Positions 1,429 to 60,000 of a DNA stretch of 64,000 bases are shown one piece after another (the stretch's first letter is position 1; every line of letters starts with the position of its first letter). The notes under the pieces are model-generated. The model did not search any database. It had not been told where the DNA came from and saw only the letters and a program-made list of their open reading frames with translations. Both the position numbers and the translations under genes were made by a program. Origin of the DNA: Phallusia mammillata (lineage: Eukaryota); assembly GCA_965637545.1 (NCBI GenBank), contig OZ281495.1, positions 11,532,001 through 11,596,000 on the forward strand, written 5' to 3'.

Positions 1429-2198
1429 TACTCACTGAATTGCTTTGCTGGATTTCAGCAATTATGCTGGCATCAGTTCCAGTGCTTAACGTCACTTCTG
1501 ACTATTTCACATCTGACGTTTGGTTTCCAAACAACTTTTTTGGTATTGACTTTGTTTCAAGAGAAAACATGTCACTGCTCGCAGAAAGAATATCTCATAC
1601 AAAACCGAAAGGCTGGAGCAATGTAAAACGAACAATAAGTAAAGCATTTCCACGACATTCGATCCAAGGAGAGTTTGGATATTATGGTAAAACAAGTGTC
1701 TGCATGCCACGCTTGTTTGCTACAACCAGTGAGTTTGCTTGGGAATATTCAACATTCCTCATCACAATTGACTTCCTCATGTTCATTTATATGGTGGTTG
1801 CATATGTTGTGATCTACAAGAAATCGAATAAAATGAAAGGGTCTAAAAGCACCGACATCAGTCAGAAAATGCAGAAGAGAATTACAAGGCTTATTTTAAC
1901 CGACTTATGTTGCTGGATTCCAGTTTGTGTTATGGGATATTTAAGCGTTGCAGGAATCAAGATGCCACCGGACGCCTATGTGTTAAGCGCTTGTTTGTTG
2001 CTTCCCATTAACAGCGCCATTAACCCAATAATTTACTCGAAAGTGATCGAAAAACGAATAATTAAAGTCAAAAAGTGGCTGGGTGCACGAACGCGTTCGA
2101 TGCGGTCATCAACAAATCAATCATCGAATTTACCGGTCACGCGGAGAACAGAAGCAAATAGCAACCGAGTGATAGAAACGTCCGCTGCAACAACGTGA
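1429..2198 (+). pseudogene. 5'-truncated duplicate (TM4-TM7 and C-tail) of the LDLa-GPCR
   Basis: Near-identical to 8541-9319, with homology starting abruptly at TACTCACTGAATTG (1429 vs 8541). The frame is open for 252 aa, but there is no N-terminus or TM1-3 upstream. Confidence 0.8.
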
Positions 2199-4712: not shown

Positions 4713-7700
4713 ATGTTACAAATATTCTTTCTGCTGTTTGTCTTCGGATCAGTGAAAAGTGTTTGTCCTGCGGAGGAACTTAGTCTCGCTCCTCTTCTTT
4801 TTACAAGTAAGACAAAAGTTTTTACTGTTGTCAAAACATTTCAATTGTAGTTAAATTTTATCCTTTCAAAATATGTAATGAGTTTTCGTTATGAAAGCGT
4901 TAAATAGAACCATGATACCATCTATCCTGGTTATTTATATCGTGGTTTTATCACATAAATAGAAAGGCAAATGAAAAAGAACAGTTTTGGCTGAATGATT
5001 TACAGTCACTATATATCGGTGGTCCACATTTTTTCAATGTAGAACGGTTCTTTCGTAGTTTGCCCGGGTACCTATACACGCGGTTCAATTAGGCTGAAAA
5101 TGGTGTTGAAACTAAAATTTTCCACAAAACAAAAGTTTATAAAACAAAAGAATAACTTCTTATTACCCACTACAACAATCAGGAATTAATTTTACCTAGA
5201 TTCGCTTGTTTACACGTATCAATGATCCAAGAGTATTTCTTGTGACATTAAAAACAAAAATAAGACATTAGATAATACTAATTTTACTAATTTTTATAAC
5301 TAATCAGAAGTATAAAACTAGCGTAACTAATCTTATACTTCTGATGGACTAAAAGACCCTTGTTCGGCAAAATGGACTCCACATAAATTCACAGAAAAGG
5401 ATTGTAATATAAAACTTCGAGCATTAGCAGTTCCGCTGAAATCATTTAGCGGGCTCTAAGTGGAGAACCGTAGTTATGCTATTCCTCCAAAGTTGATTCG
5501 CAACCCCTGCCCCATGGACCTTTTATCGTTACTTTGTTGCGCGCGAAGTAATTTTGATGGAAACCGCACGTTTTTGCCCCCAATTTCTAACACAAACAAT
5601 TGATGTGAAGTTTAGGTTAACTGTCGCTAGTTTTGTTTGCTAGAAGTTCATATTGACCTAGTAACAATTATTTTCGAATTTATCTTTCCCAAATCTATCA
5701 GGAAAATACGTTTGTTTATTTGACAGGGCCAGAAAATATATCGCTGTGCGAGGAACCCTACCTAAACCCCAACTGCCGTTGTCCGTCTTCAATGTTTGAA
5801 TGTGATTGTCACAAGTTAGGTCTATGTAAAAACAGGTCGGGTTGCATACCGATTTCAAAAGTAAACAACAGAGTACTTGATTGCACCGACAAGAGCGACG
5901 AGTTAAGTAATATTTGTCTTCCAGACCGATTTCAGTGCGATTGCTTTAACACAACTTGCAGAGGTTCGTATGGTTGCGTAAATACGTCCTTTCTCTGTGA
6001 CGGAAGACCTGATTGTTTGGATGGAAGCGATGAAGATAATTGTCCTTGCGCAGCAGATCAAGGCACTTGTGCCTGTCACAAAACACGAAACTGCACTACT
6101 AGGATTAACTGTATACCTTATTATTTTCGCTGTAACGGAATAAATGAATGTGGGGATTGGAGCGATGAAGAAAATTGCACTTGCGCGAGTTATATGTTTG
6201 AATGTCCCTGCTACAAAACAAGAAGTTGCGGAAAAAATTATCGAGGCTGTGTTCCCAAAGATATGCAGGTGTGTGACGGGCGAAATAACTGTGGAGATTG
6301 GAGTGATGAAGTGAATTGCAATTGTTCAAAGAGTAAATTTGAATGCGATTGTTTCAAAACGAAAAACTGTACTTTTGATTACGACTGCATTCCAAAGAAA
6401 TGGATGTGTGATGGAATCAATCACTGTGGTGACTGGAGCGATGAACGTAATTGCTCCTGTCCAGCTAACCAGTTCGAATGCCAATGTTATAAAACGGGGA
6501 ACTGCCCTGAAAGATTCGGTTGTGTATCTAAAAAATACCAATGCACTAACACTGCTGGTATTTGTGGAGATAAGAGCGATGGATTCAATTGCACTTGTCC
6601 GACTGGTCAGTTTACATGCGCATGTGTTGGTACGAAACAGTGCATTGGAAGGGAGGGAAGTTGCGTTGATCGATCACTGCTTTGTGACGGTCACGCTGAT
6701 TGTTTCGACGGAAGCGACGAATTCAATTCTACGTGCTACTGCTCAGGAGTGTTCGCAAGATGTCCATGTTATCCCAACAACAAAACTTGTTCTCCTGCTG
6801 GTCAATGTTTACCTTTTGACTGGGTAGGCGATACATTTTTGGATTGCCACGACGGAAGTGACGAGGTTTGTTCGATCAGCACTTTTTCGTGCCAGTCCTG
6901 CACAGTGGTGGCTGTATCTTGTCAAAACAAAATACAAGTTGGACAACTAATACATTCTACAGTCGCAGGGAAATGTAATAAGGCCGTGCACCCATCGTGC
7001 GCTAATAGTGTCCACGACTGTAAAACCGACAAAGTAGTTTGCACTTTTGCAGACTGCAAACAATCACCCAGCTTTTGTGAGGAAGTATTCTTTTGTGAAA
7101 ACAACACCCAGATTATTTCTAGCAGTTTCTTTTGTAATTCTGCAAACGACTGCGGCGACCATAGCGACGAAATCAGGGAAGGGTTTGGCTTTAAATGTTC
7201 TGGGTCATCAAGAGAAGGTGATTGTGTTTTGCCTCAAGCCAACGTTTACGATTCAGTGGCTCAGTGTTCGGATAAATCAGATCTCTGCTTCACCGACAAA
7301 CAGTTCAAATGCTTTCGCTGCTTGGATAAAAAGCTCATCATATCACTAAAGCAAGTTTGTGATGGTGTCATTGACTGTCACGACATGTCAGATGAATGCC
7401 TTTGTTCAAATCAAAGTTTATGTAACAGTGTAAAGGGAAACTGTCCCCCTAATCAGATACTTTGTCAGAACGGCTCCAAATGTGTTAACCAAACCATTGC
7501 GCTGTGTAATAGAAATGTCCAATGTGCTAGTCAAACCAACACAAAGTCATGTATGCTACCAAAACGATTACAACAAACCCAGTGTCCAGCAGAAATCACT
7601 AACGACCTCAAAATAGACGAAATTTTTCGTTGTGCAAAAAATGATAACAGATTGTTGAGAAAAAAATTTCAGTACTATAGAGCAAAAAAATATAATGCCA

Positions 7701-9319
7701 AGGTTTTATTTTCATCAATATGTGACGGGACGTATAAAGATCGAATGGGAGGACTGGGTGAAACTGCATGCCCTAACATGTTCTATTGTGCAGCAAAGGA
7801 CGAAATATCTATTAAGCAAAGTCAAGTGTGCGATGGAAAACTTGACTGTGACGACAAATCAGACGAGTTCTTGAGTCGCTGTCAAGATAAACGCTTTTAT
7901 TGTCAAAATCAAGACAGGATCTCTATTAACAGAAATAGCGTATGTGACGGAATTGTCGATTGCGATAATGGAACGGATGAAATAAAATGCCTTTGCAATC
8001 ACGTGAGGTTTTATTGCACAAACAAACAGCCCTTGTCGGTTGAAATGAAGCTTGTTCAAAACGGAATCCAGGACTGCTCTGACGGAAGTGACGAATGCGT
8101 AAACTTAGCAGGTGACGCGTTTGCAAATGTCAACGAAATGATTGGAAATGTAGTGTATCGGGTCATATTCTGGATTACAGGTGTATTGGCGTTGGGAGGA
8201 AACCTACTTGTATTTATTGCCACTGTCTACAGCTTATACAATGCAAAACGAACTCAGAATGTTTTTATCAACACCAATGTATTTATTTTAAACCTCAGTG
8301 TATCAGATTTTTTAATGGGAGTTTATTTGCTTGCCGTTGTTATACAGGGAACTCGGTTTTCCGGTTCTTACTGTTTGTTTGATAAGGCATGGAGATCGAG
8401 CAGCTTGTGTTCAGGACTTGGAGCACTTGCCGTTTTGTCATCACAGTCTTCAGCCCTAACTATGACGGCCATGACCACTTTTCGCCTCGTATCAATTTAT
8501 AAACCCTTTTTGACTCAAAGTTTGGATGTTGGTCCAATAATACTCACTGAATTGCTTTGTTGGATTTCAGCAATTATGCTGGCAACAGTTCCAGTGCTTA
8601 ACGTCACTTCTGACTATTTCATATCTGACGTTTGGTTTCCGAACAACTTTTTTGGTACTGACTTTGTTTCAAGAGAAAACATGTCACTGCTTGCAAAAAG
8701 AATATTTTATACAAAACCGAAAGGCTGGAGCAATGTAAAACGAACAATAAGTAAAGCATTTCCACGACATTCGATCCAAGGAGAGTTTGGATATTATGGT
8801 AAAACAAGTGTCTGCATGCCACGCTTGTTTGCTACAACCAGTGAGTTTGCTTGGGAATATTCAACATTTCTCATCACAATTGACTTCCTCATGTTCATTT
8901 ATATGGTGGTTGCATATGTTGTGATCTACAAGAAGTCAAATAAAATGAAAGGGTCTAAAAGCACCGACGTCAGTCCGAAAATGCAGAAGAGAATTACTCG
9001 GCTTATTTTGACCGACTTCTGTTGCTGGATTCCAGTTTGTATTATGGGATATTTAAGCGTTGCAGGAATAAGGATGCCACCAGATGCCTATGTGTTGAGC
9101 GCTTGTCTGTTGCTTCCCATTAACAGCGCACTTAACCCAATAATTTACTCGAAAGTGATCGAACAACGATTATTTATAGCCAAAAAGTGGCTGGGTGCAC
9201 GAACTCGGTCAATGCGGTCATCAACAAATCAATCATCTGTTTCAGCAGTCACGCACAGCACGCGGGGAACAGAAGCAAACAGCAACCGAGTAATAGAGAT
9301 GTCCACTGCAACCACATGA
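4713..9319 (+). CDS. Rhodopsin-class GPCR with ~15 LDLa-type repeats and no LRRs (GRL101/LGR type C-related)
   Basis: Signal-peptide exon 4713-4806 (MLQIFFLLFVFGSVKS..., phase-1 GTAAG donor) is phase-compatible with a 3.6-kb exon 5727-9319. That exon has CDG..C.D.SDE repeats and a 7TM region with GN(TM1), NLSVSD(TM2), CWIP(TM6) and NSALNPIIY(TM7). Additional small 5' exons cannot be excluded. Confidence 0.9.
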
Positions 9320-28704: not shown

Positions 28705-29290
28705 CCCTAAATCATTCACCAGAAGGACACATTTACCTTTCCCACAGATCTCTTTCAAATGTGCTAAAAAGGGTCATAGCAATAATTGTTGCTGAACTGG
28801 TAAAAGGTACCACCGTCATTTCGCCGAAATGAGAATTCGAGTTTTTTGGGGGAAATGTATGTGATTTATCCGTTTACCATATACATGTTTCAAAATGTTT
28901 TTTTTTTGTTTTTTTTCGACAATGAGGCGGCATTCCGATAACTGAAAATTTAACGAAATGTTTATTTGGAAAAAAATGCGTTTTATTTGTTGGGGACAAA
29001 TTTATTTAAGTTTAAAACCTTATGGCCATGCTTTTTAGCTGAATTTATTTTATCTTTAACTTTTAAGTGGCTAATCAGGAACACTAAAGTAAAACTTATT
29101 TGTATTACGAATTCTACATTAAAGTTTGCAACTTTAACTAGGACTTTCCAACCACGCCCAGGAGGCAGTCCTTGCGGTGGTCGTTCGGTTTTTTGTTAAC
29201 CCAGGACCTTTGCCAATAGCCGTATTTTACCTGGGCCTAGAGTTTATTAGGTTTTGTATGGAGATGTGCAGTTTTTTATTTCGTAGTTGA

Positions 29291-32200
29291 CTATTGTTTT
29301 TTTTGAAAAGTGTTACAGGATAAGGAGAAATTGGCAGTAGCAACGTCGTACGACGTTTCATCGCGGGTAGCCTGGTAGTAAATTATAGCCTCACGGTTTA
29401 CAACTATATCCAAAAATTCGAGCAAATTGTAATTAGTTTTGTTAACAACGGAATTCAACAAGCTTTGTTTCAAAATTAAATTTGGTTTTAATTCTAATCC
29501 CACTCTTGAAGAACTAACAATTTGGCCGTCTGAAAATTGGCGGTTCCTAATTTTTTCTCGGCACAGGAAATGCTTTACGTATTGCCACAAATTAAAGGTT
29601 TCAATTGTCGAAATATTGCTTTTCTCAAATGAAAAATTTTGATAATACTTTTTTAGGTCGCATTTTGATAAGGTCAAATAAAGGCAGTATCTATACCCAG
29701 CAGTTACACATTGGGCGTTCGTCCAGTTCATACTCATATCACGTAGCAAGTGTTCTGTTATAGTATGATAAGTTTCTCTGTCCTTGTTGTTTAAATCTAG
29801 CTCAGTTATTTTATCAATTACATTATCTGAAGTAGCGTGGTACAACGGATAATTTTCAAAAACATTTTTTTCCGAAATTTGAGCGTTAGCGTGGTGTAAG
29901 TTAAGTTTTCTTTTTTTTCTTTTTATTGTGATAGGGATTTGGCTTTTACTTGGCATATTCTGGGGAATTTGAGATAATTTAGTGTAAAACAAAATGTATG
30001 CACCACTCTGTATTCGATGTTCAACATTGTCCCAATTAACATGTTTGATTTTTTTGTCATTGTATTCTAATATTCCTTGCTCCGCAAAAGAGTAGGCCAT
30101 GTAATGCCCGGAACTGGATTGCGCGCCAACATGAACAATTGCACATTTTAAAACAAACACAGCGTCTCCTAGTGTCAATCGCAAATCCGGTAAAATCGTT
30201 TTAGTGCATTTTCCGCTAATACTAGATCGTGGCAATACGATCGGCAAAACGTCGGAAGTTGAAACAAGTTTTAATTTTTTTTCAAACTGTTTTTCACTGC
30301 CGCAAGTGGAGCAGTTTGCCAAAAAGATTTCATTACAACATTTTTCGAAATACTTGCTTAATTTACTGCCAGCAACTATGTTTTGGTACATCGGAACAAA
30401 CCAAAAGTTTTGCTCCGGTTCCATTTGATTCTTGACGCTTTTGCAGGTTTGGCAAGTGGTGGTTGACCGAAATTGATGCCTAGGATTAAGGCCACAGTTT
30501 TCTAGCAGACTACCATTTTGATATAACATTAAAAACTCGCCGGCATCATGTTGATTACTAAAGTTCCATTTAAGATCTTTACAGATTTTTTTAATCAAAT
30601 TGCGATGGACGTCGACGTCGTACGATTTGTTACTTAAGGAAGTTAAAAAGTTAGCAACGGGGTCAGAAACAGCCGTACGAGGTGAATTGGCAAACTTTTG
30701 CTTCATGAGGAATTTAAGTGATTGAAAAACAGAATTTAACCAGCATGTGTTTCCAAAGTTTTGCAAACCGACGGATTGGTCATTTTGTTCGTCTAAATGT
30801 CGTTTTATTGCAAAATTGCACTGTGGCGAATTTTCTACTAAGGCGTATGCAATCCACTGACGGAAAAACTTAGGGTCAAATTTACATAGGGGTTGTTTTG
30901 ATACGTTTGAAATAATTTGGTCTACTCCATAACAAACGCAAACTCCGCAACTTAACTGGTCTGTTTGTGGTATTAAAGTGTCCTGGAAGAGTTTAATCTT
31001 TGAGCCTGGGCCAGTAATGTCATTTAAAAACGGCACTAGATGGGACTGTATTAACTTAACAAGTTCGTTTTGGGTTTCTTTAGCTGAATCAAATAATTTA
31101 AGTTCCATTTTATCTTTGCAAAACCAAATGAGCATAAAATGATTTTTCCATAGGATAGGAATAAGTAAGTTATTCCTGATTTGACCGTCTGTTGGCCGAC
31201 AGATGGGTTGCATAACTCCTTGCAAGTTTTTAAATGCTTTGTTGTTTAAAATTTGTTCAGTAACGCAGCAGTCCAGCATACCAAACTCGGAATTTAGAAA
31301 AGTGTTACCAATATTAACCGATCGGTGGATATACGAATCTACGACATTACTAGTAAGCCACCCGAACGTGTCCTTAGTGTGAACATGTGACAGAAGTGCG
31401 TCGCGTGTGGAGTTTTTTGGTTCGGTGCACAGTGAACACAAATCTAACCATGTTAGTGGACTGCCGTTGGGCGTTATTAAAGCCTGATTTAAAATCGATG
31501 CGTCAGTAAATTTCACATGATGCCAAATATAATTTGCCAATGTTTTCACCATTTTTACGACAGAGGGAGTTGATGAAACAAAGGAAAAATGCGCCAAAGT
31601 TGGGGTACTGGTTAATTCATTGTTGTCTTTAGTACTATTATTTTGAAACCGAATTCGTTTTGCCAATCGTGGTGACGAATAGAAGCTTTTTGAATTTCGT
31701 TTTCGTTTTTTAAATTGCGCCAAAACCAGAGGGGTGGATTTTTCGTCTGTTCCAGTGTTTTGCGTATTTTTATTTAAGTGCATCAAACTGTCAGCAAATT
31801 GTTTTTCCTGAACCTTTATCGCTTTGTGATATAGATGGACAAAGTCGTCTATTCGTGCTACTCTTTTACCGTCGATATAATTTTGTTTCATGTCCCCGAA
31901 ATGCTGTTCTATAATTCCTTGTGTGTTATTGTTTGTCAAAATGGTCTGAAATTTTACATTACTTAATTTGTCACATTTATTTGAATAATCTAAGTACAGC
32001 TCATGCTGCTCAGGCGACGTGTCGTCGGCAACATGTCGAGATAAATCCCCTAGCAATAGATGTGATGTGCAACAAATTCTGCTCAGTACCCGTTCAAGTA
32101 ATATTTTGAAAAAAGTTGGATTGTGGTACAAATTGTTTTCAAGATTTGCTGACAGTTGTATGTTGTACTCGTCTGAAACAATAATTTTTTTAAACATTCT

Positions 32201-33349
32201 GTCGTAACGATGAAAAAATGGGGATTTTTTTTCTTGTAAAGCATCATCACTTTTTCCAGTAAAAAAATAATCTGCATCATCACCCGGGTCCAATTCAAAG
32301 GTGTCATTGTCAACGTTTACACTTAGAGAGTTGTCGAGTTTGTGTTTCAAATTGTTAAAGTGTTTTTCTACAAGGGGAGAGTTTTTTTCGCAGTGGGTTA
32401 AAATAATTAAACTAGCAACAGCATCAACTAATTCCTTAATAGTTTTGCAAGTAAAAAGCAAATTTACCCAGTATAGTGCCGACTGAGCTAATTTCTTGTC
32501 GGACCAGTGTTTCAGGCACATAATTTTGGCTGCTTTCATGGCATGACTGTAGCAATTATGCACTATTGTTAATTTTAAATCATCTTTAAGTGGCAACCCA
32601 ACTACTATGCGATGACAACGATTGTAATATTCAAGGCGCGATTCTCTACATAAGGCTTTAAGAACCCCATTCCACATGGCCATGGATCCATCAATAATTA
32701 TAAAAGCCGGTTTTCTAGATACTTTACAAATTTTTACAACGTTCATTAGAAACGACTCGAGAAAATGGCTGATGCTATTGCTGTCATGACAAGTGGTAAC
32801 GTTTGTTGCCACCGGAAGTGCCACTTCCCCTTTTGTAGGGTTTCTTACTAAAAGTGTGTACACCTGAAAATCGGAGTATCCGTTTTGACTACGAAGGCAA
32901 CTTCCAGTAGCATCAAAGTAGACGATATCTTTTAAACAAAGGTCGAAATAGAGTTTTACTTGTAAATTTGAATATAATGTTACAGACGGGGGATGAATGC
33001 ATATTAGGCGAACAAAAGTTCGTTGCTTTTTTAACTGGAGAAAGTGCAACAAATTTATATACCATAGTTTGGAATAGTGGAACATAGATTTACCTTCGCT
33101 TTTTATGTTGCGAAGCACGGATTGGGAGGGTAAAAAAGTATGTGCACCTAACCAACGTTCCGCTTCTGTTAAATTGTCAAATAATTTTCTTTGTAATTTA
33201 TTCGCCGACTGAAATTGAAGTTGGCGTTTAAGTTGGTCCCGCCTTTTACCAGATACCCGTCGTCTCCGTTTGCAACCTTTTTGGTGGTTTCGCATGCCTC
33301 TTACCGTTACTTGGCCTTCAACTCGATCCACGAACGAAATCAAATCCAC
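29291..33349 (-). CDS. MULE/NOF-like DDE transposase fused to Ulp1 (C48) SUMO protease and USP (C19) deubiquitinase
   Basis: Numbering is in the 1352-aa ORF. DDE: YFD146ATG, IID220GS, C266YSH269, IIE481QHF. Ulp1: GWLTSNVVDSY, NH737F, FD754S, Q795TDQLSC801G. USP: GLQNFGNTC869WLNSVFQSL, QHDAGEFL, two CxxC, GH1082Y, YN1097D1098, AYILFY. The frame stays open ~55 codons upstream of the annotated GTG start. Confidence 0.9.
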   Translation of the reverse strand: MDLISFVDRVEGQVTVRGMRNHQKGCKRRRRVSGKRRDQLKRQLQFQSANKLQRKLFDNLTEAERWLGAHTFLPSQSVLRNIKSEGKSMFHYSKLWYINLLHFLQLKKQRTFVRLICIHPPSVTLYSNLQVKLYFDLCLKDIVYFDATGSCLRSQNGYSDFQVYTLLVRNPTKGEVALPVATNVTTCHDSNSISHFLESFLMNVVKICKVSRKPAFIIIDGSMAMWNGVLKALCRESRLEYYNRCHRIVVGLPLKDDLKLTIVHNCYSHAMKAAKIMCLKHWSDKKLAQSALYWVNLLFTCKTIKELVDAVASLIILTHCEKNSPLVEKHFNNLKHKLDNSLSVNVDNDTFELDPGDDADYFFTGKSDDALQEKKSPFFHRYDRMFKKIIVSDEYNIQLSANLENNLYHNPTFFKILLERVLSRICCTSHLLLGDLSRHVADDTSPEQHELYLDYSNKCDKLSNVKFQTILTNNNTQGIIEQHFGDMKQNYIDGKRVARIDDFVHLYHKAIKVQEKQFADSLMHLNKNTQNTGTDEKSTPLVLAQFKKRKRNSKSFYSSPRLAKRIRFQNNSTKDNNELTSTPTLAHFSFVSSTPSVVKMVKTLANYIWHHVKFTDASILNQALITPNGSPLTWLDLCSLCTEPKNSTRDALLSHVHTKDTFGWLTSNVVDSYIHRSVNIGNTFLNSEFGMLDCCVTEQILNNKAFKNLQGVMQPICRPTDGQIRNNLLIPILWKNHFMLIWFCKDKMELKLFDSAKETQNELVKLIQSHLVPFLNDITGPGSKIKLFQDTLIPQTDQLSCGVCVCYGVDQIISNVSKQPLCKFDPKFFRQWIAYALVENSPQCNFAIKRHLDEQNDQSVGLQNFGNTCWLNSVFQSLKFLMKQKFANSPRTAVSDPVANFLTSLSNKSYDVDVHRNLIKKICKDLKWNFSNQHDAGEFLMLYQNGSLLENCGLNPRHQFRSTTTCQTCKSVKNQMEPEQNFWFVPMYQNIVAGSKLSKYFEKCCNEIFLANCSTCGSEKQFEKKLKLVSTSDVLPIVLPRSSISGKCTKTILPDLRLTLGDAVFVLKCAIVHVGAQSSSGHYMAYSFAEQGILEYNDKKIKHVNWDNVEHRIQSGAYILFYTKLSQIPQNMPSKSQIPITIKRKKRKLNLHHANAQISEKNVFENYPLYHATSDNVIDKITELDLNNKDRETYHTITEHLLRDMSMNWTNAQCVTAGYRYCLYLTLSKCDLKKYYQNFSFEKSNISTIETFNLWQYVKHFLCREKIRNRQFSDGQIVSSSRVGLELKPNLILKQSLLNSVVNKTNYNLLEFLDIVVNREAIIYYQATRDETSYDVATANFSLSCNTFQKKQ

Positions 33350-33497
33350 ACATATTTTTATTTCACAGTTGCAGCATCTCCCGTGGGCACAATACAGTTT
33401 GATTGCTCCTTCGAGGTAGCTGTCGGAATTGGGCTTGATGGTATTAACAGTTTGGGGGTCCCGTAAATAATGGCTTTCAATGTTAGGGACGCAATTA

Positions 33498-34765
33498 TCA
33501 TATATTTGCCGTATTTTTTTTTAAAATAGTGTCTTTGTACGCATTGCTCCCAAATTTATTCGCAGTGCGTTTTTTTGTAATACTTTTCCAAACGTCAAGA
33601 CCAATGTGAATTTTTTCTTGTAGATTTACGTGGACATTGTGCATCAGAGAAGTTGTTTGTTTTTTAACTTTACCAAGATCGTTTAAAATATTTGTCGAAA
33701 TCCAGTTCTCCTCTGACGAACTGTTTTGAATTGTGCTATCAATTTGTGGATCCAAACTACAATCGCTTAAATTATCAGAAAATGCGCAATCGTTCGCGTG
33801 AGTTGACATGGCGTCCGTGGCAGGTGAGAGGCTTTCGTCAGAAAAGTCGGATAGCGGTTGAGTTTTTGAAATACTAGTTGAAATAACGGGATTTTTTGTG
33901 TTAGGGGATGCTGGCTTGCTGGTACTGATTTCTGTGCCTGTGTCAGTGGAAGCATGGCGGTACACATTTTTTGGATCGGCGTTTACAATTGAATTATTAC
34001 ATACAAAATGAAGCTTATTCCATTGCTCGTTGCTAAATTTTTGGGGGTAACATTTTGAAACACGCATCGTGGATGAAACCATTGTAAACACGATTCGCAT
34101 TCTACCATTTGTTCTCCGCACCATACAGTTTTGCAAACACAATATGTTTTTTGACGTGGCGTCCCTTTATTGTCTGAAACGTCGGAATTTGATCGTACAT
34201 CATCTGGGTTTAATTTTAAATATGACTGTTGGACGGAATTTCTAAATGCCAGGTTATTGAACCATTCATATCGAATCGTTTTTACTGTTTGCTTGGTAAT
34301 TTGCAAATGACATCCTTGTAAATAAGCAGTTATTGCACTTATAGGTAAAGACGAGTGATTGGGGTATCTAGTAAGCTGCTTTGCCAGAGCATCAATACAC
34401 GCTTTTTTATATTCGCCCTGAATGCCATTACTATCCTTTTTTCCATGTAATGTTTTTATATGTTCCCTTTCAAACGCGAAAAGCTTGTTTAAACGGTAAC
34501 ATTGAGTATGATTTTTCCAAAATGAGTTTATTTTTAAAAAGTTTTTAGCGGATGTATCATCAAACCCAATAAGATTGTGTTTTTTGAAGTACAAAGCAAT
34601 TGCTTTTGCCAAACGATTTATCGCGTTTTTACTTGCCCCGCCAATTTTAATTTTAGGGTTGTTGCAAACTACATATATACCATGCAAACCTCTCGCATTA
34701 TGCGCAAATTTGATTGTTTGAACGGTTTTTTTATTGTATTGGGGGAAAACAAATGGTGATTTCAT
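33498..34765 (-). CDS. Frameshifted 5' part of the transposon polyprotein: N-terminal domain, PHD finger and S/T-rich linker
   Basis: ATG at 34765 (MKSPFVFP...). PHD YCVCK...MVECESCLQWFHPRCV continues in the -1 frame as ...LHFVCNNS. The linker frame ends at an A9 run, where the +1 frame continues into the transposase. Confidence 0.65.
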
Positions 34766-35003
34766 CCACGACCATGTTTCGCATGTAAGAAAAAAGTCTG
34801 TGAGAAAAAAATCAAAAAACAAACACATGCACAAACCGTCTGCGACTTCCGGGAAGAGCACACACAAGATGCATAGGTAGGTAGTGAAGACACACATAAA
34901 GAAAGGGAGAAACAGCCGAGTCCTGTGGATTAGTGAAAACCCACGGCCAGTATTCTTTCCTCTTGTCTGTATGCCTTGCACCTGTTGGTTTCGCCTATGC
35001 TCG

Positions 35004-35889
35004 ACCGACGAAGCTTCCACCTTCGCCGGAGCCGTCACCTTTACCGACGAAGTTGTCACCTACGCCGGAGCCGTTACTTTCACCGACGAAGTTGCCAGCT
35101 TCGCCGGAGCCGTCGCCTTCACTGACGAAGTTGCCATCTTCGTCGAAGCCGTCGCCTTCACTGACGAAGTTGCCAGCTTCGCCGGAGCCGTCACCTTTAC
35201 CGACGAAGTTGTCACCTACGCCGGAGCCGTTACTTTCACCGACGAAGTTGCCAGCTTCGCCGGAGCCGTCGCCTTCACTGACGAAGTTGCCATCTTCGTC
35301 GAAGCCGTCGCCTTCACTGACGAAGTTGCCAGCTTCGCCGGAGCCGTCGCCTTCACCGACGAAGTTGCCAGCTTCGCCGGAGCCGTCGCCTTCACCGACG
35401 AAGTTGCCAGCTTCGCCGGAGCCGTCACCTTCACCGACGAAGTCGCCGCCTTCGCCTTCACTGACGAAGTTGCCATCTTCCTCGGAGCCGTCGCCTTCAC
35501 CGACGAAGTTGCCAGCTTCGCCGGAGCCGTCGCCTTCACCGACGAAGTTGCCAGCTTCGCCGGAGCCGTCGCCTTCACCGACGAAGTTGCCATCTTCGTC
35601 GGAGCCGTCGCCTTCACCGACGAAGTTGCCAGCTTCGCCGGAGCCGTCGCCTTCACCGACGAAGTTGCCAGCTTCGCCGGAGCCGTCGCCTTCACCGACG
35701 AAGTTGCCATCTTCGTCGGAGCCGTCACTTTTACCGACGAAGTTGCCAGCTTCGCCGGAGCCGTCGCCTTCACCGACGAAGTTGCCATCTTCGTCGGAGC
35801 CGTCACTTTTACCGACGAAGTTGCCATCTTCGTCGGAGCCGTCGCCTTCACCGACGAAGTTGCCAGCTTCGCCGGAGCCGTCGCCTTCA
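35004..35889. repeat. GC-rich 39-bp tandem array, ~23 units
   Basis: Unit ACCGACGAAGTTGCCAGCTTCGCCGGAGCCGTCGCCTTC; 13-aa periodicity in four open frames; one 27-bp short unit; units 2-5 duplicated as 6-9. Confidence 0.97.
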
Positions 35890-38427
35890 CTTGTCAAACT
35901 TTTTCCTTCATTGCCGGAACATAATTTCGTTGTCCGTTAAACTTTCGAAAAATGTCCACTAAGCTGGGCCCCTTTAAACAAATGAACCACTTTTAACCAC
36001 TGGGGGTAGTATTTTATAGAGTCGTTCGTCCGCTTTTTATTGCAGAAATGGATAGTACTCGGGTATATGTTTCAAAAACACTTGTCAAACTTTTTCCTTC
36101 ATTGCCGGAACATAATTTCATTGTCCGTTAAACTTTCGAAAAATGTCCACTAAGCTGGGCCCCTTTAAACAAATGAACCACTTTTAACCACTGGGGGTAG
36201 TATTTTATAGAGTCGTTCGTCCGCTTTTTATTGCAGAAATGGATAGTACTCGGGTATATGTTTCAAAAACACTTGTCAAACTTTTTCCTTCATTGCCGGA
36301 ATATAACTTCGTTGTTCGTCAAACTTTCGAAAAATGTCCACTAAGCTGGGCCCCTTTAAACAAATGGGCCACTTTTACTCACTGGGGGTAGTATTTTATA
36401 GAGTCGTTCGTCCGCTTTTTATTGCAGAAATGGATAGTACTCGGGTATATGTTTCAAAAACACTTGTCAAACTTTTTCCTTCATTGCCGGAACATAATTT
36501 CGTTGTTCGTCAAACTTTCGAAAAATGTCCACTAAGCTGGGCCCCTTTAAACAAATGGGCCACTTTTACTCACTGGGGGTAGTATTTTATAGAGTCGTTC
36601 GTCCGCTTTTTATTGCAGAAATGGATAGTACTTCAGTATATGTTTCAAAAACACTTGTCAAACTTTTTCCTTCATTGCCGGAACATAATTTCGTTGTCCG
36701 TTAAACTTTCGAAAAATGTCCACTAAGCTGGGACCCTTTAAACAAATGGGCCATTTTTAACCACTCGGGGTAGTAATTTATAGAGTCGTTCGTCCGCTTT
36801 TTATTGCAGAAATGGATAGTACTTCAGTATATGTTTCAAAAACACTTGTCAAACTTTTTCCTTCATTGCCGGAACATAATTTCGTTGTCCGTTAAACTTT
36901 CGAAAAATGTCCACTAAGCTGGGCCCCTTTAAACAAATGAACCACTTTTAACCACTGGGGGTAGTATTTTATAGAGTCGTTCGTCCGCTTTTTATTGCAG
37001 AAATGGATAGTAATCGGGTATATGTTTCAAAAACACTTGTCAAACTTTTTCCTTCATTGCCGGAACATAATTTCATTGTCCGTTAAACTTTCGAAAAATG
37101 TCCACTAAGCTGGGCCCCTTTAAACAAATGAACCACTTTTAACCACTGGGGGTAGTATTTTATAGAGTCGTTCGTCCGCTTTTTATTGCAGAAATGGATA
37201 GTACTCGGGTATATGTTTCAAAAACACTTGTCAAACTTTTTCCTTCATTGCCGGAATATAACTTCGTTGTTCGTCAAACTTTCGAAAAATGTCCACTAAG
37301 CTGGGCCCCTTTAAACAAATGGGCCACTTTTACTCACTGGGGGTAGTATTTTATAGAGTCGTTCGTCCGCTTTTTATTGCAGAAATGGATAGTACTCGGG
37401 TATATGTTTCAAAAACACTTGTCAAACTTTTTCCTTCATTGCCGGAACATAATTTCGTTGTTCGTCAAACTTTCGAAAAATGTCCACTAAGCTGGGCCCC
37501 TTTAAACAAATGGGCCACTTTTACTCACTGGGGGTAGTATTTTATAGAGTCGTTCGTCCGCTTTTTGTTGCAGAAATGGATAGTACTCGGGTATATGTTT
37601 CAAAAACACTTGTCAAACTTTTTCCTTCATTGCCGGAACATAATTTCGTTGTTCGTCAAACTTTCGAAAAATGTCCACTAAGCTGGGCCCCTTTAAACAA
37701 ATGGGCCATTTTTACCCACTGGGGGTAGTATTTTATAGAGTCGTTCGTCCGCTTTTTATTGCAGAAATGGATAGTACTTCAGTATATGTTTCAAAAACAC
37801 TTGTCAAACTTTTTCCTTCATTGCCGGAACATAATTTCGTTGTCCGTTAAACTTTCGAAAAATGTCCACTAAGCTGGGACCCTTTAAACAAATGGGCCAT
37901 TTTTAACCACTCGGGGTAGTATTTTATAGAGTCGTTCGTCCGCTTTTTATTGCAGAAATGGATAGTACTTCAGTATATGTTTCAAAAACACTTGTCAAAC
38001 TTTTTCCTTCATTGCCGGAACATAATTTCGTTGTCCGTTAAACTTTCGAAAAATGTCCACTAAGCTGGGCCCCTTTAAACAAATGAACCACTTTTAACCA
38101 CTGGGGGTAGTATTTTATAGAGTCGTTCGTCCGCTTTTTATTGCAGAAATGGATAGTACTCGGGTATATGTTTCAAAAACACTTGTCAAACTTTTTCCTT
38201 CATTGCCGGAACATAATTTCGTTGATCGTCAAACTTTCGAAAAATGTCCACTAAGCTGGGCCCCTTTAAACAAATGGGCCACTTTTAGCCACTGGGGGTA
38301 GTATTTTATAGAGTCGTTCGTCCGCTTTTTATTGCAGTAATGGATAGTACTCGAGTATATGTTTTAAAAACACTTGTCAAACTTTTTCCTTCATTGCCGG
38401 AATATAATTTAGTTGTTCGTCAAACTT
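35888..38427. repeat. 191-bp satellite-like tandem array, 13 full units plus a partial 14th
   Basis: CACTTGTCAAACTTTTTCC recurs at 35888, 36079, 36270 ... 38371, with exact 191-bp spacing at every position checked. Units are highly similar, and variant patterns recur at 955 bp (5 units). Confidence 0.98.
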
Positions 38428-38699
38428 GTAACTTACGTTAACTTTGACCTTCCTTTTAATTCACCACTGACTTGTAAAAGGATTAAAGCTTTTCTTTTGG
38501 CTTAAAAAAGTGTTTGTTTTTGATAATGAACAATGCTTGCAATGTAATTTTGCATAATGGTTTTTATTTTTTACTATTTTTATGATTGGGTGATCTATTC
38601 CTTAATGTGGTAAACTGCGAAATCAAAAAAATTTCCTCTAAATATTTTTTGACTTCCATTTCGGCGAAATGACATTTGTTAAAAGGTTTACAGTTTACA

Positions 38700-54059: not shown

Positions 54060-57000
54060 ATGAAATTATTTGCTCTTGCGGTGTTGGGGACTGCTCTACT
54101 AATATTTGAAGGTGAGTTTTACTACTTTTGTATGGCAGTAAGCAATAACTTTTTTCTGTCTATTCTTTTAACCCCATAGCCGTACTTTAAATGTGGGTAC
54201 GGGTACTCAGTATGAAGGTGCCTAATATGAAAAATAACGAAGCATTAAAACAAAGGGAGGTCTAACTCTGCCATGTCTAAAAACTTAACCAGAAGTTGAA
54301 CCCTATATTTTGTTTAGCTCTGAACTAAGACAAATAAAACGCTGCCTGTACTATTTTTGTAATCGCCACAAAGAAAAAGTAGCGATTTTAGAAGCACGTA
54401 TCCGAAGAATACGTGAGATAACTCTTATAGGGCATAGCAAAATGACAATACGGTCATTTTCAAGCAGTGGTCTTTTTGGTAGTATAGTGATGTACCGAAG
54501 TGACGGTTGGCCGAAATAATTTGGCCATATACGCCGATACCGTGTATAAAATTTATGCCTAAACTTTTTATGTCGCGAAGTTAAAACATCATAAATCAAC
54601 TTTGTGTCTATAGTAAACTCGAGTCACGTTGTCTGCAAAATGTACGATGTTTTGTTTAGTTCAAGTATTGTAAAATTTGTTTTGGTGTGTCAAAAATAGG
54701 CATCAATAACATACGGTTAATTTCAATTAAAAACATCTATCGGAACGGGACATTTAGGTTTAGCCTTGTGACCGAATACTATGTTTCGGCCCGTACCCTC
54801 CAAGGCAGATTCGGTACATCACTGTAGTAAATACCAAAGGTATAAAACTTGGTTTAACTACGAAAACCGGGGCGCCGCAGAATAAACGAGAACGTTTCAA
54901 TGGAATCTTTTACACTCGAGAATGTGCTTAACCTAAATATCCAAATCTAGCCCGCCAGTTACAAATTAAGTAAATGCTTGTGAATCGTTATTTGATGATC
55001 AGCATGTTTTGTTAGAGCATCACTTTTAATACTCGGTCCACAACAAAAAACACTAAAACTATTATTCTTGGTTGGTACAAGGATGTCGGTTATAAACTCG
55101 GTCCACCCCTACCCCATAGTATTGAGATCAACGGTTACAAAAGGCACCACTCATATCCCATATTCGGCCATTGCAAATGGGTTGTTTCTGGTTACAAGGC
55201 ACCATTACCGCTTATAATTTGTACAATTGTTTTTATTTAGGATGTTGTTGGCAAGGTATTAAGGCCCTTGAAGTGTTGTAATCACCTTTCTGTTGATAAC
55301 CCCTAGCTATGACTAACAGTTTATGAATAACAGCCCCAAATCATGCGTTAAACGCTACAAACAACCAGTGACGAAATAGGTGGACACATTCAGCTGCATG
55401 ACGTTTTGAAAGAAAGATTACACCAGTTCATGTAGGCGTGCGCTACATTTCTATTGCTTGGAAAACAATAGGTTAATCACCAGGAAACGTGTAACTGACC
55501 ATTTTAATTTAATGAAACCTGTATAACTCTGTGTGAGTAATTAAGTCCGTTACATGTATCTGTTGGTATAGGAGTTCGATGGGAGGCAAAAACGGTCAAA
55601 ACGAGTTTGAACTAAACCCACTGAAAATATGACTTTTCTTCGATTTTTTGACTCCCAAAAATCGGAAAAAAAAACTGAAAGGCTGTAGCCTTGATTTTTT
55701 CAAAAATCGGGTTAAATTTTTTTGAAATTTAGGTGTTTTTTTCTTTAATTTTAAATTTCTTTTTTATGCTTTTAGATTCTGGTTTAAACCGATTTGGCAA
55801 CAGGGCTTACGGCAAGAATTTGCACAATGTGCGCCAAAATGTACAGGTCAAAATGTGCAGGTGCCAAAATGTGCAGGTCAAATTGTGCGCACATTTTTCG
55901 AAAATGTGTGTACAATTTGAAAAACGCTCGCATGCCCATCTCTGATTTGGAGGTTCGGTAGTAAGCTAAAACTGGCCAGAACAAGTTTGAAACTAGTAAT
56001 ATTTCGGCGAAAACTTACTCATAAAAAGATTTTTATTGACCTTCCAAAATCGAAAAATAAGAATGTAGGCTATATCCTAAATAGCTTTTTTTTTCGAAAA
56101 TCAACCCAAAATTTCATATACCCGATTTCGGTTATATTATTGGTTAAAGTAACTACTTATGTACAATGCACGACTTTGAGCTGATCATTTGAAGTTCAGG
56201 TCTTTTATTTTGTTTGGACCTTTTAAAACATAAAAAACTGATCCAGTTTAAAACCCTTTTAGACCCATAACCTTTTCTTAAGTGTTACAATTCCAAACAT
56301 CTTGATTTGTACGACTTTTTAGAATGCAAGGCAGATATGGGAAAACAAAATGAAAGTTGTACGAACTGCCACCAAAACGCTTCTTGCGTAGGCCCCCAGC
56401 AATGCTCTTGCAATAGTGGACTAACCGGAAACGGCACATATTGTTTTGATCTTGATGAATGTGCTTCTGGAGGATCCTTTTGTGGAATCAACAACACATG
56501 TGTGAACACTTACGGCAGTTACACTTGCATAAAATGTGTAGAACCGTTTTGTGAAGGAAGCAACACTTTTTCTAACAGTGTGACGTATCCTCCTATAAAC
56601 TGCGATGGATATGTCACATGTAACTGTAGTTTAGATAACGTTACTCAAGCCGTTAAAACAGACCTTTGCACTTCTCCGCTTCTTTACATATATCCATGTA
56701 CTATGGTGGAATATTGTAAATCCAGTGAAAGCATCCAATGCAACTGCACATTCCACAATGTCACTAATACATAATTAAGAGATGTCTCTCGAAATCAATC
56801 GATTCCTTGCACTTTTCTGATTATGCAAGCCAACGCTACAGGCAATCCTCAATGCACCTGTAAACCAGGGTTCAACAAATCAGGAGCAGCGTGCATAGAC
56901 ATAAATGAATGCTTAACCAATCCGTGCCATGAAAATGCCAAATGCTTTAATATCGATGGCAGTCACCAATGTACATGTGATTCGGGCTATACTGGAAACG

Positions 57001-60000
57001 GATCATTTTGTACAGATTTTAATGAATGTAACGCAAATCCATGTCACTCAAACGCGTGTTGTAACAATACCGCTGGTGGTTTTCAATGTAAATGCCGGCC
57101 AGGGTTTTCTGGTAACGGAACCCACTGCACAGAGATGGAAACTATAAAAGCTACTAATCAGTGTCATACCAACGCAAGCTGCAGCAATACTATAGGAAGC
57201 TACCAATGCAGTTGTAACCATGGGTTTAGTGGAAATGGATTTGGTTGCGAAGATGTAAACGAATGCGTGTTGGGAACCGATAACTGTCATCCAACCCAAG
57301 GTCTGTGCACTAACCAAGTTGGATCTTTCACTTGTTCATGTAAAGCTGGATATTCTGGCGACGGAGTGACCTGCCAAGGTATGTCTCGTGTTAGGAGTTT
57401 GTCAAATCGGGCAATTTCCCCGACAAATAAAACAAAAAAACATGCTAAGGCCAGTCATCAAAATTGGAAAAAATGCAAAAGCGCTAATGGCAGTGGTGGG
57501 ATTTAAATTTTTTGTTAGCCGGGTCTATCACAAAAGTCATATTTTTGAGTCGGTTCTGTTACAAAAAGTCCATTGACAGTAACCAATAATGCTAACCGGT
57601 TCGCTGATCTCATAAAAAGACGATTCTATAATACCGGTGCGAACCGTCTGAACCCCACCACTGGATAATGGTTATTCACATCCAAAACAACGCTAAACAA
57701 TGGCAAAATGTGTGTAAAATATTTGCGATGCCGGCTGTGTTGCAGTAATTGACCAGTGCGCCGCAACGATCAACGATTGTGACAATAATGCACAATGCAA
57801 CATGACGGGAAATAGTTACAAATGTAAATGCAATGCGGGATTCCACGGAGATGGAAAAACATGTAAAAGTAAGTTTGGTTTGGTAAACATATTTATGACA
57901 AATTACAAAACCAAAGTATATACTACTATCACTTCATATTATGCTTATCAGCACCGATGGCAAGTATACTGTAAATGTTGTTAGGAGTCTACTTTCGGGT
58001 TACCAGACGTCCGGAATTACCCGGACATGTCCGAAATTTTGTCGTATAATCTGTGTCCGGAAATAATTTTCAAAAACATTACGTGTCCGGAATGTTAACG
58101 TCTAGCGGTCTACTTACAGCAGTTTTCAAAATTTTACGTTATTACTGTTGTCGTACATTCGTGCAAAACAATGCGTCTTGAAGGCTTACAATATACCCGT
58201 TAAAAGGACCGGATGTTGTAAAACTTTATGTTTTGTAATTTATTCGAAAACAAAGCTGAGCTTTTTTATATGGTAACCCTAGTCTACTACTAACACACGA
58301 TTGCTATAATCAATATGCTGAAATAAGCAGATCAAATTCACACTACAAGTGCAAGAATTAAAAAGTATCGTCGTAACTGAAATTTGTATTTTATTTGCTC
58401 TGTTTTAAATTTTACAGAACTTTTTCTCCGCGAATTCGGACAAAACATCACTTCGACCTCTTTAAATCAAATGCAATTGAAAATCGAGCTTTCCAAATCT
58501 CTCCTTTCGGCTTTTCAGTACCAGAACGGCAACGTAAAACAAATCCTTATCGTCAACATCAGCGGGTCCTATGTGCAGTAAGTACAACGTTCAAGATTCA
58601 CTATTATGAAGTAAATTCAACCTAACTGCAATAAACACTTCTAGATATTATGTCCAATATGTCAATGGACCACAGGTGGATTCACTTTTTCTCGACAGCT
58701 ACGTGAAGTATGAAAGGACCAAGCCAATATCGCTTCTCAGTGGCTTGCCTCAAACATGTAAGTTTTTTCAACGTTAGTTGTAGACAAAAAGCAGAAATAA
58801 ATACTGTTTATTTTTTTCTAGCTTTTTGTAAACAAATCTCTATCGGTGGTTACACTTTCCCAAAGATTTCCGTAAACAAGTTAAGCTACTCCACGGAAAT
58901 GTGCCCTAGAGGTAAGCGGTTGCCTATTGGCAACAATTTTGTGTCTAAAGCCAAATTAACAATAAAGATATTTTAAAAATGTAAGGTGCACCCATTATGA
59001 CTTTTCTTAGACTGGATGTTGGCACAATTCACGTTGGGAGTGTCTCTTAAGGTTTAAAGAGCTATCAAAAACGAAATAATAAAAACCTTTACGTCCAAAC
59101 AAAAACAGCGAAAAAAATCGCTTATGTTTAAATATGTAAATATTTCGTTATAGTGGTTATGTCTAATTATTTTGTTATTCCGTCATAATATTAGTGATTG
59201 AACTGGTGTTGTATAGGTTATTTCCAGGCATCTCTTCGCTGCATACCACTGGTAATGAATACAGTTAATGGTGTACTGCATACTTCACAATTCGACGCAA
59301 ATGGCGTGGTTTCAGTTTCGTGTGAAGACCAGATTAAAGATATCAAAGTAAGTTCTGATAGTTAACCATACTTGTAAATTTCGCTACTACGGAAATTGTA
59401 CTTCAATTGGGTATTCGCCTATGTGTGTAACATTTGCTTACGTTCAAAACAACATAATCACAAAAGGTTGCCTTACCAGAGTCGGGATTTGGGCCGGGCT
59501 TTCATTGTCAATTTTTATAGGCCTTTTAAGCAAACATTAGGGCCTAAATACAGCAGTAAAAAACTCATGCAGCGCATGAGACAATTGCGGTTATACCTAA
59601 GCCCAAGAACAGCAAATATTTAACAAAAAAATATGTTTGATTCTCTATTGTATTGTTTTACTAATGGTTTGCTAGGAATTATCTTTGTTGGCGCTTGTAA
59701 GACAACAGAATATTTATATAAAATCGTACAGGACTGCCAGCACTTAATAATAAAATCATTTTGTCAGATCAACGTCTCTTCACCTACTCAGGAATCAGTT
59801 GAGCAGGCAGCAAGCAGTCTTCAAATTATTACGTCTGGAGATACGCCGCTATCAAAAGAAGAAGTTGAGCAGTCATTTACAGTCATTACTTCAATAAGTA
59901 CAGCTGTTGAGACCGGTGCTGTAATGATTAGTTTTTGGTTTATTTTAATTCGTTAAATAACGTATAGGCTATAGTTTGTACTAAAGACTAAATATTCGGT

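Follow-up and report, generated by a model that had tools for sequence, protein, structure and literature searches.

Results

Structure of the element

The 64-kb window analysed here (all 64,000 nucleotides of positions 11,532,001 to 11,596,000, forward strand, of contig OZ281495.1 in the Phallusia mammillata assembly GCA_965637545.1) contains a Mutator-type DNA transposon whose one very large gene encodes a DDE transposase and, predicted on the same polypeptide, two proteases of the SUMO and ubiquitin systems: one of the Ulp1/SENP type (MEROPS C48) and one of the USP type (MEROPS C19). The element is flanked by a target-site duplication (TSD) and bounded by terminal inverted repeats (TIRs), and its main open reading frame (ORF) lies on the minus strand. 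Coordinates refer to the window and residue numbers to the product of the main frame:

28801 to 28808, left copy of the TSD, 8 bp, TAAAAGGT, read from the sequence and the same as 38680 to 38687
28809 to 38679, the whole element, a Mutator-type DNA transposon of 9.87 kb, delimited by TIRs and TSD
28809 to 28831, plus strand, left TIR, 23 bp with a perfect 17-bp core, from sequence comparison of the ends
29291 to 33349, minus strand, main open frame of 1352 codons including the stop, with transposase, C48, USP and C-terminal domain
29294 to 29932, minus strand, conserved C-terminal helical tail, aa ~1140-1352, after the basic run KRKKRK
29984 to 30772, minus strand, USP/UCH deubiquitinase domain, MEROPS C19, aa 860-1122
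30800 to 31432, minus strand, Ulp1/SENP-like cysteine protease, MEROPS C48, clan CE, aa ~640-850
31763 to 33031, minus strand, DDE/RNase-H-like transposase core with a long helical insertion, aa 107-529, from alignment, model and fold matches
33498 to 34142, minus strand, Ser/Thr/Asp-rich linker of 214 codons, open in a frame that differs from that of the PHD region and the main frame
33514 to 33522, minus strand, A9 homopolymer, second frame-shift site
33983 to 35059, minus strand, open stretch upstream of the main ORF and in phase with it, with a conserved N-terminal region and a PHD finger (~34037-34153)
34043 to 34047, minus strand, C5 homopolymer within the PHD finger, first frame-shift site
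35004 to 35890, tandem array of 23 units of 39 bp (13 codons), placed between gene and right end, which can be read through in several frames on both strands
35888 to 38427, satellite-like array of 13.3 units of 191 bp, 96% identical, immediately internal to the right end
38657 to 38679, minus strand, right TIR, from sequence comparison of the ends
38680 to 38687, right copy of the TSD, 8 bp, TAAAAGGT, abutting the right TIR

The original prediction, made from this DNA sequence alone, had described a bounded element at 28809-38679 with TIRs and an exact 8-bp TSD, and the ends read exactly so. The left end from 28809 is ACCACCGTCATTTCGCCGAAATG and the right end, reverse-complemented from 38679, is ACAAATGTCATTTCGCCGAAATG; 20 of the 23 bases agree, and a weaker, patchy similarity extends to ~75 bp (on the left to ~28883). 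TAAAAGGT directly adjoins both TIRs as an exact 8-bp duplication, and a 9-bp duplication is possible only with one mismatch. Within the window the 17-bp TIR core, GTCATTTCGCCGAAATG, is present at both element ends and nowhere else, with a chance expectation of 0.00 in shuffled sequence. The TIR core CATTTCGCCGAAATG (28815-28833; 38657-38673) is in addition near-palindromic, such that the left end matches on both strands with two mismatches, and it may be a candidate binding site for a dimeric transposase.

Transposase domain

The catalytic residues of the proposed Mutator/NOF-type D-D-(CxxH)-E core are found where they had been placed, at D146, D220, C266-x2-H269 and E481, and in a family alignment of 31 relatives D146, D220 and H269 are invariant while C266 and E481 are nearly so. 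The core is modelled with a predicted local distance difference test (pLDDT) above 90, within a model of aa 100-860 that averages 86.6. Its best structural match in Swiss-Prot is the NOF 120.7-kDa protein of the Drosophila FB-NOF element (E 6.9e-17, query residues 2-645), with further fold matches to FRS6 (4e-6), ISRM3 of the IS256 family (9e-6) and FAR1 (1.4e-5), and the lone transposase match in a PDB fold search is ISCth4, also of the IS256 family (E 3.5e-4). In the ESM Atlas a NOF-named cluster ranks first, carrying PHD in 34% of its members and Peptidase_C48 in 45%, and among the 10 rows shown 7 of the remaining ones carry PF10551. The Pfam MULE family (PF10551) is matched by 3 of the 31 relatives, weakly (best E 4.5e-4), and a family profile of the transposase run against PDB sequences gave chance-level matches only. 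From the fold matches, the DDE/CxxH residues and the TIRs with their 8-bp TSD we conclude that the element belongs to the Mutator (MULE/IS256) superfamily, for which TIRs and a TSD of 8-11 bp are the usual mark; the 23-bp TIR and 8-bp TSD seen here agree with it.

Protease domains

The C48 domain carries H737, D754, Q795 (the oxyanion Gln) and C801 in canonical order, so that the Ulp1 H-D-C triad and oxyanion Gln reported earlier hold residue by residue, and an alignment of 17 relatives gives the signature GWLS..VVD.Y, P.L...HF.LLW, L.L.DS and Q.D.SSCGVCVC, in that order. Of these 17 domain-family members 4 match PF02902 (best E 4.8e-6), and the family profile run against the PDB finds SENP8 best (E 1.9e-4) together with SENP1 and SENP2. 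Against the Pfam-verified C48 domains of distant relatives, hhalign reports a probability of 96.3% (E 2e-9), and the columns of the catalytic His, Asp, Gln and Cys line up. Foldseek matches of the model of aa 100-860 are Ulp1, SENP1, SENP2, SENP5 and NEDP1, at probability 1.0 and TM scores of 0.67-0.74.

The USP domain is matched by PF00443 over the full length of the profile (aa 860-1122, E 9.7e-17, profile positions 1-254 of 254) and has every motif expected of it: GNTC869W, QxDAxEF, two CxxC pairs forming a zinc ribbon, SGH1082Y and N1097-D1098, as well as N864. The full Cys box, His box and Asn/Asp of the original prediction are therefore all present, in a domain with a USP fold. Sequence matches in the PDB are USP36 and USP12, and an AlphaFold model of aa 590-1352, with pLDDT ~80-95 through model residue 540, retrieves USP18, USP46, USP36 and USP12 in Foldseek (probability 1.0, TM 0.65-0.70 on the target). 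Possible substrates of the two proteases are SUMO, NEDD8, ubiquitin and ISG15. In the ESM Atlas the clusters nearest to aa 600-1135 are short USP proteins of giant viruses (Nucleocytoviricota) with a score of 0.82, which is below the meaningful level; giant-virus USPs are a possible lead to the source of the USP in the element.

Beyond the USP, the tail at aa ~1140-1352 matches the tail of relative P0020 (BLASTP E 2e-8) and, weakly (E 0.035), an ORF directly downstream of relative P0001 on metagenome contig L001; it has no Pfam family match, and its helical model is of low confidence. The tail follows the last of three basic runs in the 1352-codon product (KRRRR at 27, KKRKR at 547 and KRKKRK at 1143), where two stretches resembling nuclear localization signals had been counted.

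The fusion among relatives

A word-indexed homology search with the whole protein found nothing; an exhaustive HMMER search with aa 130-1130 (E <= 1e-3) returned 671 relatives. Domain architectures were counted in 150 listed representatives, one per 50%-identity cluster, with hidden Markov models built from our own alignments:

transposase, USP: 13 representatives
transposase, USP, C48: 6 representatives
transposase, C48, USP: 2 representatives (the window ORF and P0001)
C48, USP fragments: 6 representatives
transposase, C48: 7 representatives

At least 27 distinct relatives join a transposase to a USP, several of them with a Pfam-significant C48 too. The layout of the window element recurs in P0001, a protein of 2074 aa encoded in one ORF on a Tara Oceans scaffold, which has PHD finger, transposase, C48 and USP in that order. 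The opposite protease order, (PHD), transposase, USP, C48, is found in the more distant P0024, P0029, P0036, P0051, P0093 and P0102, with Pfam C48 matches of E 1e-6 to 1e-14. Two of the seven transposase-C48 proteins, P0070 and P0112, have a C48 of the C-terminal type and no USP, which is the NOF-like arrangement. The PHD finger recurs in P0001, P0024 and P0036, intact relatives have products of ~1900-2100 aa, and the USP motifs are unbroken in every family member aligned. In one ESM Atlas cluster, all 65 members (100%) have PF02902 and 83% have PF00443. Around the relatives on metagenome contigs L001, L002 and L003 no convincing TIR ends were found.

In a tree of the transposase core (21 rows, leaving out those with less than 330 aa of core or without protease information) the two C48-then-USP proteins, the window ORF and P0001, form one clade (100/100) apart from the main USP-then-C48 clade (86/94); the backbone of this tree is unresolved. 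As far as the encoded proteins tell, the fusion of transposase, C48 and USP is a family trait that occurs in two domain orders, and the PHD finger, the DDE transposase and two predicted active-site-complete proteases have been kept on one polypeptide by selection in many lineages.

Two further database proteins, P0005 (3205 aa) and P0137 (1763 aa), have 10 and 3 tandem near-identical USP domains of the USP36/42-like host type and no transposase. Gene calling may have merged tandem gene arrays into these proteins, or they are an oddity of another kind.

Copies in the host genome

Three DNA runs of the host organism supplied contigs for alignment to 29200-35150, with 166 to 259 short contig pieces per run in identity classes of 99+, 95-99 and 90-95%. 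Across this interval the contigs show hundreds of variant sites and internally deleted forms. In one deleted form 318-320 nt are skipped, from 32855/32857 to 33176, with 6-16 filler bases at the joint, which is the pattern of interrupted gap repair following excision. The element is one of a multi-copy transposon family with deletion derivatives.

The variants also carry information on selection. Among the 40 best-supported of 329 variants, 35 lie within the ORF, some of them linked on a single contig; 22 of the 35 are synonymous and 24 fall at third codon positions, whereas the same base changes placed at random yield 9.3 +/- 2.6 synonymous ones, with at most 19 in 2000 trials. The synonymous variants are spread over the transposase, the C48, the USP and the tail. 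This excess, which is indicative and not a proper dN/dS, speaks for selection acting on the coding sequence during the family's diversification. Neutral erosion of the proteases, raised beforehand as a possible outcome, is not what we see, given that the catalytic residues are kept in relatives and the copy variants are mostly synonymous.

Reading frame of the window copy

An uninterrupted frame of 1352 codons had been described, and it is present, opening at a GTG with the first Met at codon 19, although the whole gene is longer and continues in the same frame upstream with the PHD region. The PHD finger of the window copy is recognized by PF00628 (E 1.8e-5, 25.1 bits against a cutoff of 24), and the upstream region matches the PHD regions of P0001, P0007, P0024 and P0036 in tblastn and blastp searches. 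For the linker at 33498-34142 no similarity to the relatives was found.

Other copies differ from the window copy at precisely the two homopolymers that separate these parts. An extra base (C) at 34042 accounts for ~23-38% of read depth and is carried by the sole contig of an RNA-labelled run at that position. One A fewer at 33514 is seen in all of DNA run X1 and in 18-24% of runs X2 and X9, and the X1 contig concerned is otherwise identical to the window copy over 229 nt. The +1 change brings the PHD finger into frame with the linker, and the -1 change restores the original frame; by frame arithmetic, therefore, copies with both (+1 at 34042 and -1 at 33514) would read PHD finger, linker and transposase in a single frame spanning at least 35059 to 29291, or ~1920 codons. 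Since the indels of other copies sit exactly at C5 and A9, the window copy is either slightly defective, with two frame shifts between PHD finger and transposase, or mis-assembled at two homopolymers. An intron linking the PHD region to the transposase was considered and rejected: the available GT/AG pairs break the frame and the indel variants sit at both homopolymers. No splice joints were seen in the reads.

Farther upstream, the 39-bp repeat read in the gene's own frame encodes a 13-residue repeat rich in Ala, Ser, Thr and Lys, and reads over 35004-35890 reveal copy-number variants of ~120 nt. Because the N-terminus of relative P0029 is likewise encoded by a repeat, of 30 nt (L003 2754-2987), the array may belong to these proteins as an N-terminal peptide repeat.

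Neighbouring host sequence

Outside the element, an uninterrupted frame of 1199 codons at 5720-9319 (plus strand) joins 11 LDL-receptor class A repeats to a rhodopsin-type seven-transmembrane receptor downstream of them. The frame has the appearance of a host LDLa-GPCR gene, which marks the host as a metazoan; upstream of it, at 1440-2198 (plus strand), is a second 7tm_1 fragment. At 56823-57506 (plus strand) an open frame of calcium-binding EGF repeats (EGF_3, EGF_CA, cEGF) is probably an exon of a host extracellular protein.

Discussion

Relation to known elements

Within the Mutator superfamily the nearest described elements appear to be Rehavkus and FB-NOF. Rehavkus, which is related to Mutator, is described from insects and annelids (Dupeyron et al. 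2019, PMC6446971), the Rehavkus/NOF group has been in Repbase since 2006, and the Tribolium papers describe Rehavkus termini that carry satellite repeats. Seven motif blocks of the window ORF and its family consensus (DATGS; PV..(S/T)S.H....I; D.S.A..N; C..H.MK; KS.F; N.(Y/F).NP...P.WS; and (S/T)N..(V/I)E..F...K) agree, in a comparison made by eye and unscored, with the six cores printed in the supplement of PMC6446971; no exact Rehavkus motifs occur among the 150 listed relatives. The two also share a PHD finger, tandem or satellite repeats just inside a terminus, animal hosts and a similar size, Rehavkus elements being 9-18 kb long (9.5 kb for Rehavkus-1_TC of Tribolium castaneum). They differ in the TIR, which is 23 bp here, 26 bp in Rehavkus-1_HR and 190-410 bp in most others, and in the array, which is found here at one end only. 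FB-NOF (UniProt P16320) supplies the best reviewed structural match to the transposase at a sequence identity of ~13%, but no USP is reported for the NOF-named ESM Atlas cluster, and in FB elements each end is a long foldback arm built up from repeats, with a TSD of 9 bp. Because the motif blocks, the PHD finger and the subterminal arrays agree, we place the element in a NOF/Rehavkus-like branch of Mutator, with reservations about the TSD length and the by-eye comparison.

Zisupton/KDZ elements were also considered because of the 8-bp TSD and the SUMO protease. They share the 8-bp TSD and a very large transposase, and Zisupton, as Bohne et al. are said to have reported in 2012, is associated with a SUMO protease. 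Membership was rejected, as Pfam scans of the protein and its relatives gave no match to the KDZ transposase or CxC domains and the fold matches are all to MULE, NOF and IS256 proteins.

Proteases of the ubiquitin and SUMO systems have been known on transposon proteins for some twenty years, with Ulp1 in MULEs and Ginger and OTU in Helitrons. Bao, Kapitonov and Jurka listed Ginger1 and Mutator transposases that have an Ulp1 or OTU domain, and suggested that the ubiquitin and SUMO pathways play a part in transposition (Bao, Kapitonov, and Jurka 2010, PMC2836005). Plant KI-MULEs, the MuDR elements of Hydra and lancelet and Ginger1 resemble the present element in that a deconjugase is encoded by or fused to a DDE transposase, sometimes with a PHD finger (PMC2836005). 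Those elements have a single type of protease, and Ginger1 is described as having 'Either OTU or Ulp1 ... but not both' (PMC2836005), whereas here a clan CE (C48) and a clan CA (C19) protease sit on one polypeptide. A transposase with a C19 domain is already on record, XP_001314237 of Trichomonas vaginalis, which combines transposase_11 with Peptidase C19 (PMC2836005); its DDE domain is IS5/Harbinger-like and no C48 is reported for it. UCH and C48 domains are likewise found in Helitron-like elements (HELIANO 2024, PMC11417382), but the UCH-bearing ones (HLE2) have a RepHel rolling-circle protein, and C48 and UCH on one polypeptide are not reported. A protease domain on Rehavkus or MULEs goes unmentioned in PMC6446971, PMC13359780 and the preprint 10.1101/2021.09.26.461848, a comparison in which the Repbase proteins do not figure.

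The original statement that no transposase fused to a C19 protease, or to both proteases, had been described thus stands in its second half only: the C19 fusion was noted in 2010 (PMC2836005), and our literature searches, which lay outside Repbase, found no paper on a DDE transposase with both C48 and C19. The combination is best regarded as a new, or at least undescribed, variant and not as a new category.

Possible functions of the two proteases

Taken as a whole, the evidence makes it somewhat more probable than otherwise that the window holds a NOF/Rehavkus-like Mutator element with one giant gene, whose proteases act together with its transposase. The gene encodes, in order, a possible N-terminal repeat, the N-terminal region, the PHD finger, the linker, the DDE transposase with its CxxH motif, C48, USP and the helical tail. 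Several points tell against this account. The window protein taken alone has no match to Pfam MULE (PF10551) or to PF02902, both falling below threshold. The published TSD of Rehavkus and FB-NOF is 9 bp, one more than the duplication here, and the agreement with Rehavkus motifs is the unscored one described above. With a tandem array at the right end only and a similarity of the ends that stops at ~75 bp, the window copy is no true foldback element. Transcription is weakly indicated by eight contigs of depth 3-5 from one RNA-labelled run, which may contain DNA. As for what the proteases cut, the best C48 profile match is the NEDD8 protease SENP8 and the best USP fold match is the ISG15-specific USP18. 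Finally, the synonymous excess is indicative only because the variants are partial (40 of 329) and partly linked.

Since both proteases sit on the transposase polypeptide, they should act wherever the transposase is, that is, at the element ends and on target chromatin, with the PHD finger probably aiding contact with the latter. At those sites they would strip SUMO-type and ubiquitin-type conjugates. The pairing of the two proteases suggests a host pathway that uses both modifiers, and a sequence that could be undone is the one in which SUMO recruits a SUMO-targeted ubiquitin ligase, which then adds ubiquitin; this pathway extracts or degrades tightly DNA-bound complexes and signals at double-strand breaks. 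We tentatively prefer the version in which the proteases would shield the transpososome and control how the excision break is repaired, while regarding it as somewhat short of an even chance.

SUMO is needed for piRNA-guided heterochromatin, and SUMO ligases act in piRNA silencing in flies. It is possible, if less probable, that the tethered proteases instead serve against silencing, as the original prediction had it, erasing SUMO and H2A/H2B ubiquitin from the chromatin of the element so that it remains accessible and continues to be transcribed. The PHD finger at the N-terminus, a reader of histone tails, is conserved across the family, as are both proteases on a DNA-binding polypeptide, and the Mutator-family VANDAL elements, cited in PMC6446971 as encoding the anti-silencing protein VANC, would provide a precedent. 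Transposase is scarce and binds the ends only, however, which makes the erasure of marks across a 10-kb element a stretch, and this architecture is also seen in eukaryotes of marine metagenomes, which may or may not silence transposons in this way. A broader proposal, which we hold to be rather unlikely as it stands, is that the tethered deSUMOylase and deubiquitinase form a two-enzyme counter-defence that undoes SUMO- and ubiquitin-dependent restriction of transposons by the host; the restriction countered could be piRNA/SUMO heterochromatin or the removal of the transpososome by SUMO-targeted ubiquitin ligases.

Explanations in which the proteases have other targets, or none, fare worse. The great size of the product (~1900-2100 aa in intact relatives) might suggest a polyprotein that is cleaved by one protease or by both, in the manner of the clan-CE proteases of viruses and Mavericks, and clan CE does include the processing proteases of adenoviruses and poxviruses, mpox I7L being a weak fold match (E ~5e-4). 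Yet the cleavage site of USP and Ulp1 enzymes follows the C-terminal Gly-Gly of a ubiquitin-like fold, neither Pfam nor the models revealed such a fold, and the best fold matches are to cellular SENP/Ulp1 and USP enzymes and not to viral processing enzymes, so self-processing seems improbable. Mutator elements are known to capture fragments of host genes (PMC6446971), as in Pack-MULEs, and the variation in domain order between clades could mean separate captures; on that reading the proteases would be cargo without function for the element and subject to neutral decay. Against it, they are in frame with the transposase within one ORF in relatives just 25-33% identical, all catalytic residues are kept, and the copy variants are mostly synonymous, the protease regions included. 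Passive cargo is thus largely refuted by the USP motifs, the synonymous variants and the architecture counts, and we give it very little credence. A long, intact ORF under purifying selection is also what would be expected of a domesticated host gene, a transposase-derived cellular protein like FAR1 or ZSWIM that happens to lie between chance repeats. The exact TSD, a TIR core unique to the ends, the numerous diverged copies seen in three DNA runs along with shorter, internally deleted forms, and the internal satellite arrays typical of Rehavkus and foldback elements leave this scarcely credible.

Implications

Two intact, selected deconjugases in divergent lineages and in two domain orders argue strongly for a required function. 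The family offers a clean test case for what that function is, as each protease can be killed by a point mutation (C801 and C869). The analysis also puts the poorly described Rehavkus/NOF branch on firmer ground and extends its reach to marine eukaryotes. If the two proteases do counter a defence of the host, no enzymatic anti-host module would have been described before from an animal DNA transposon, and this one would be conserved throughout a widespread branch of Mutator.

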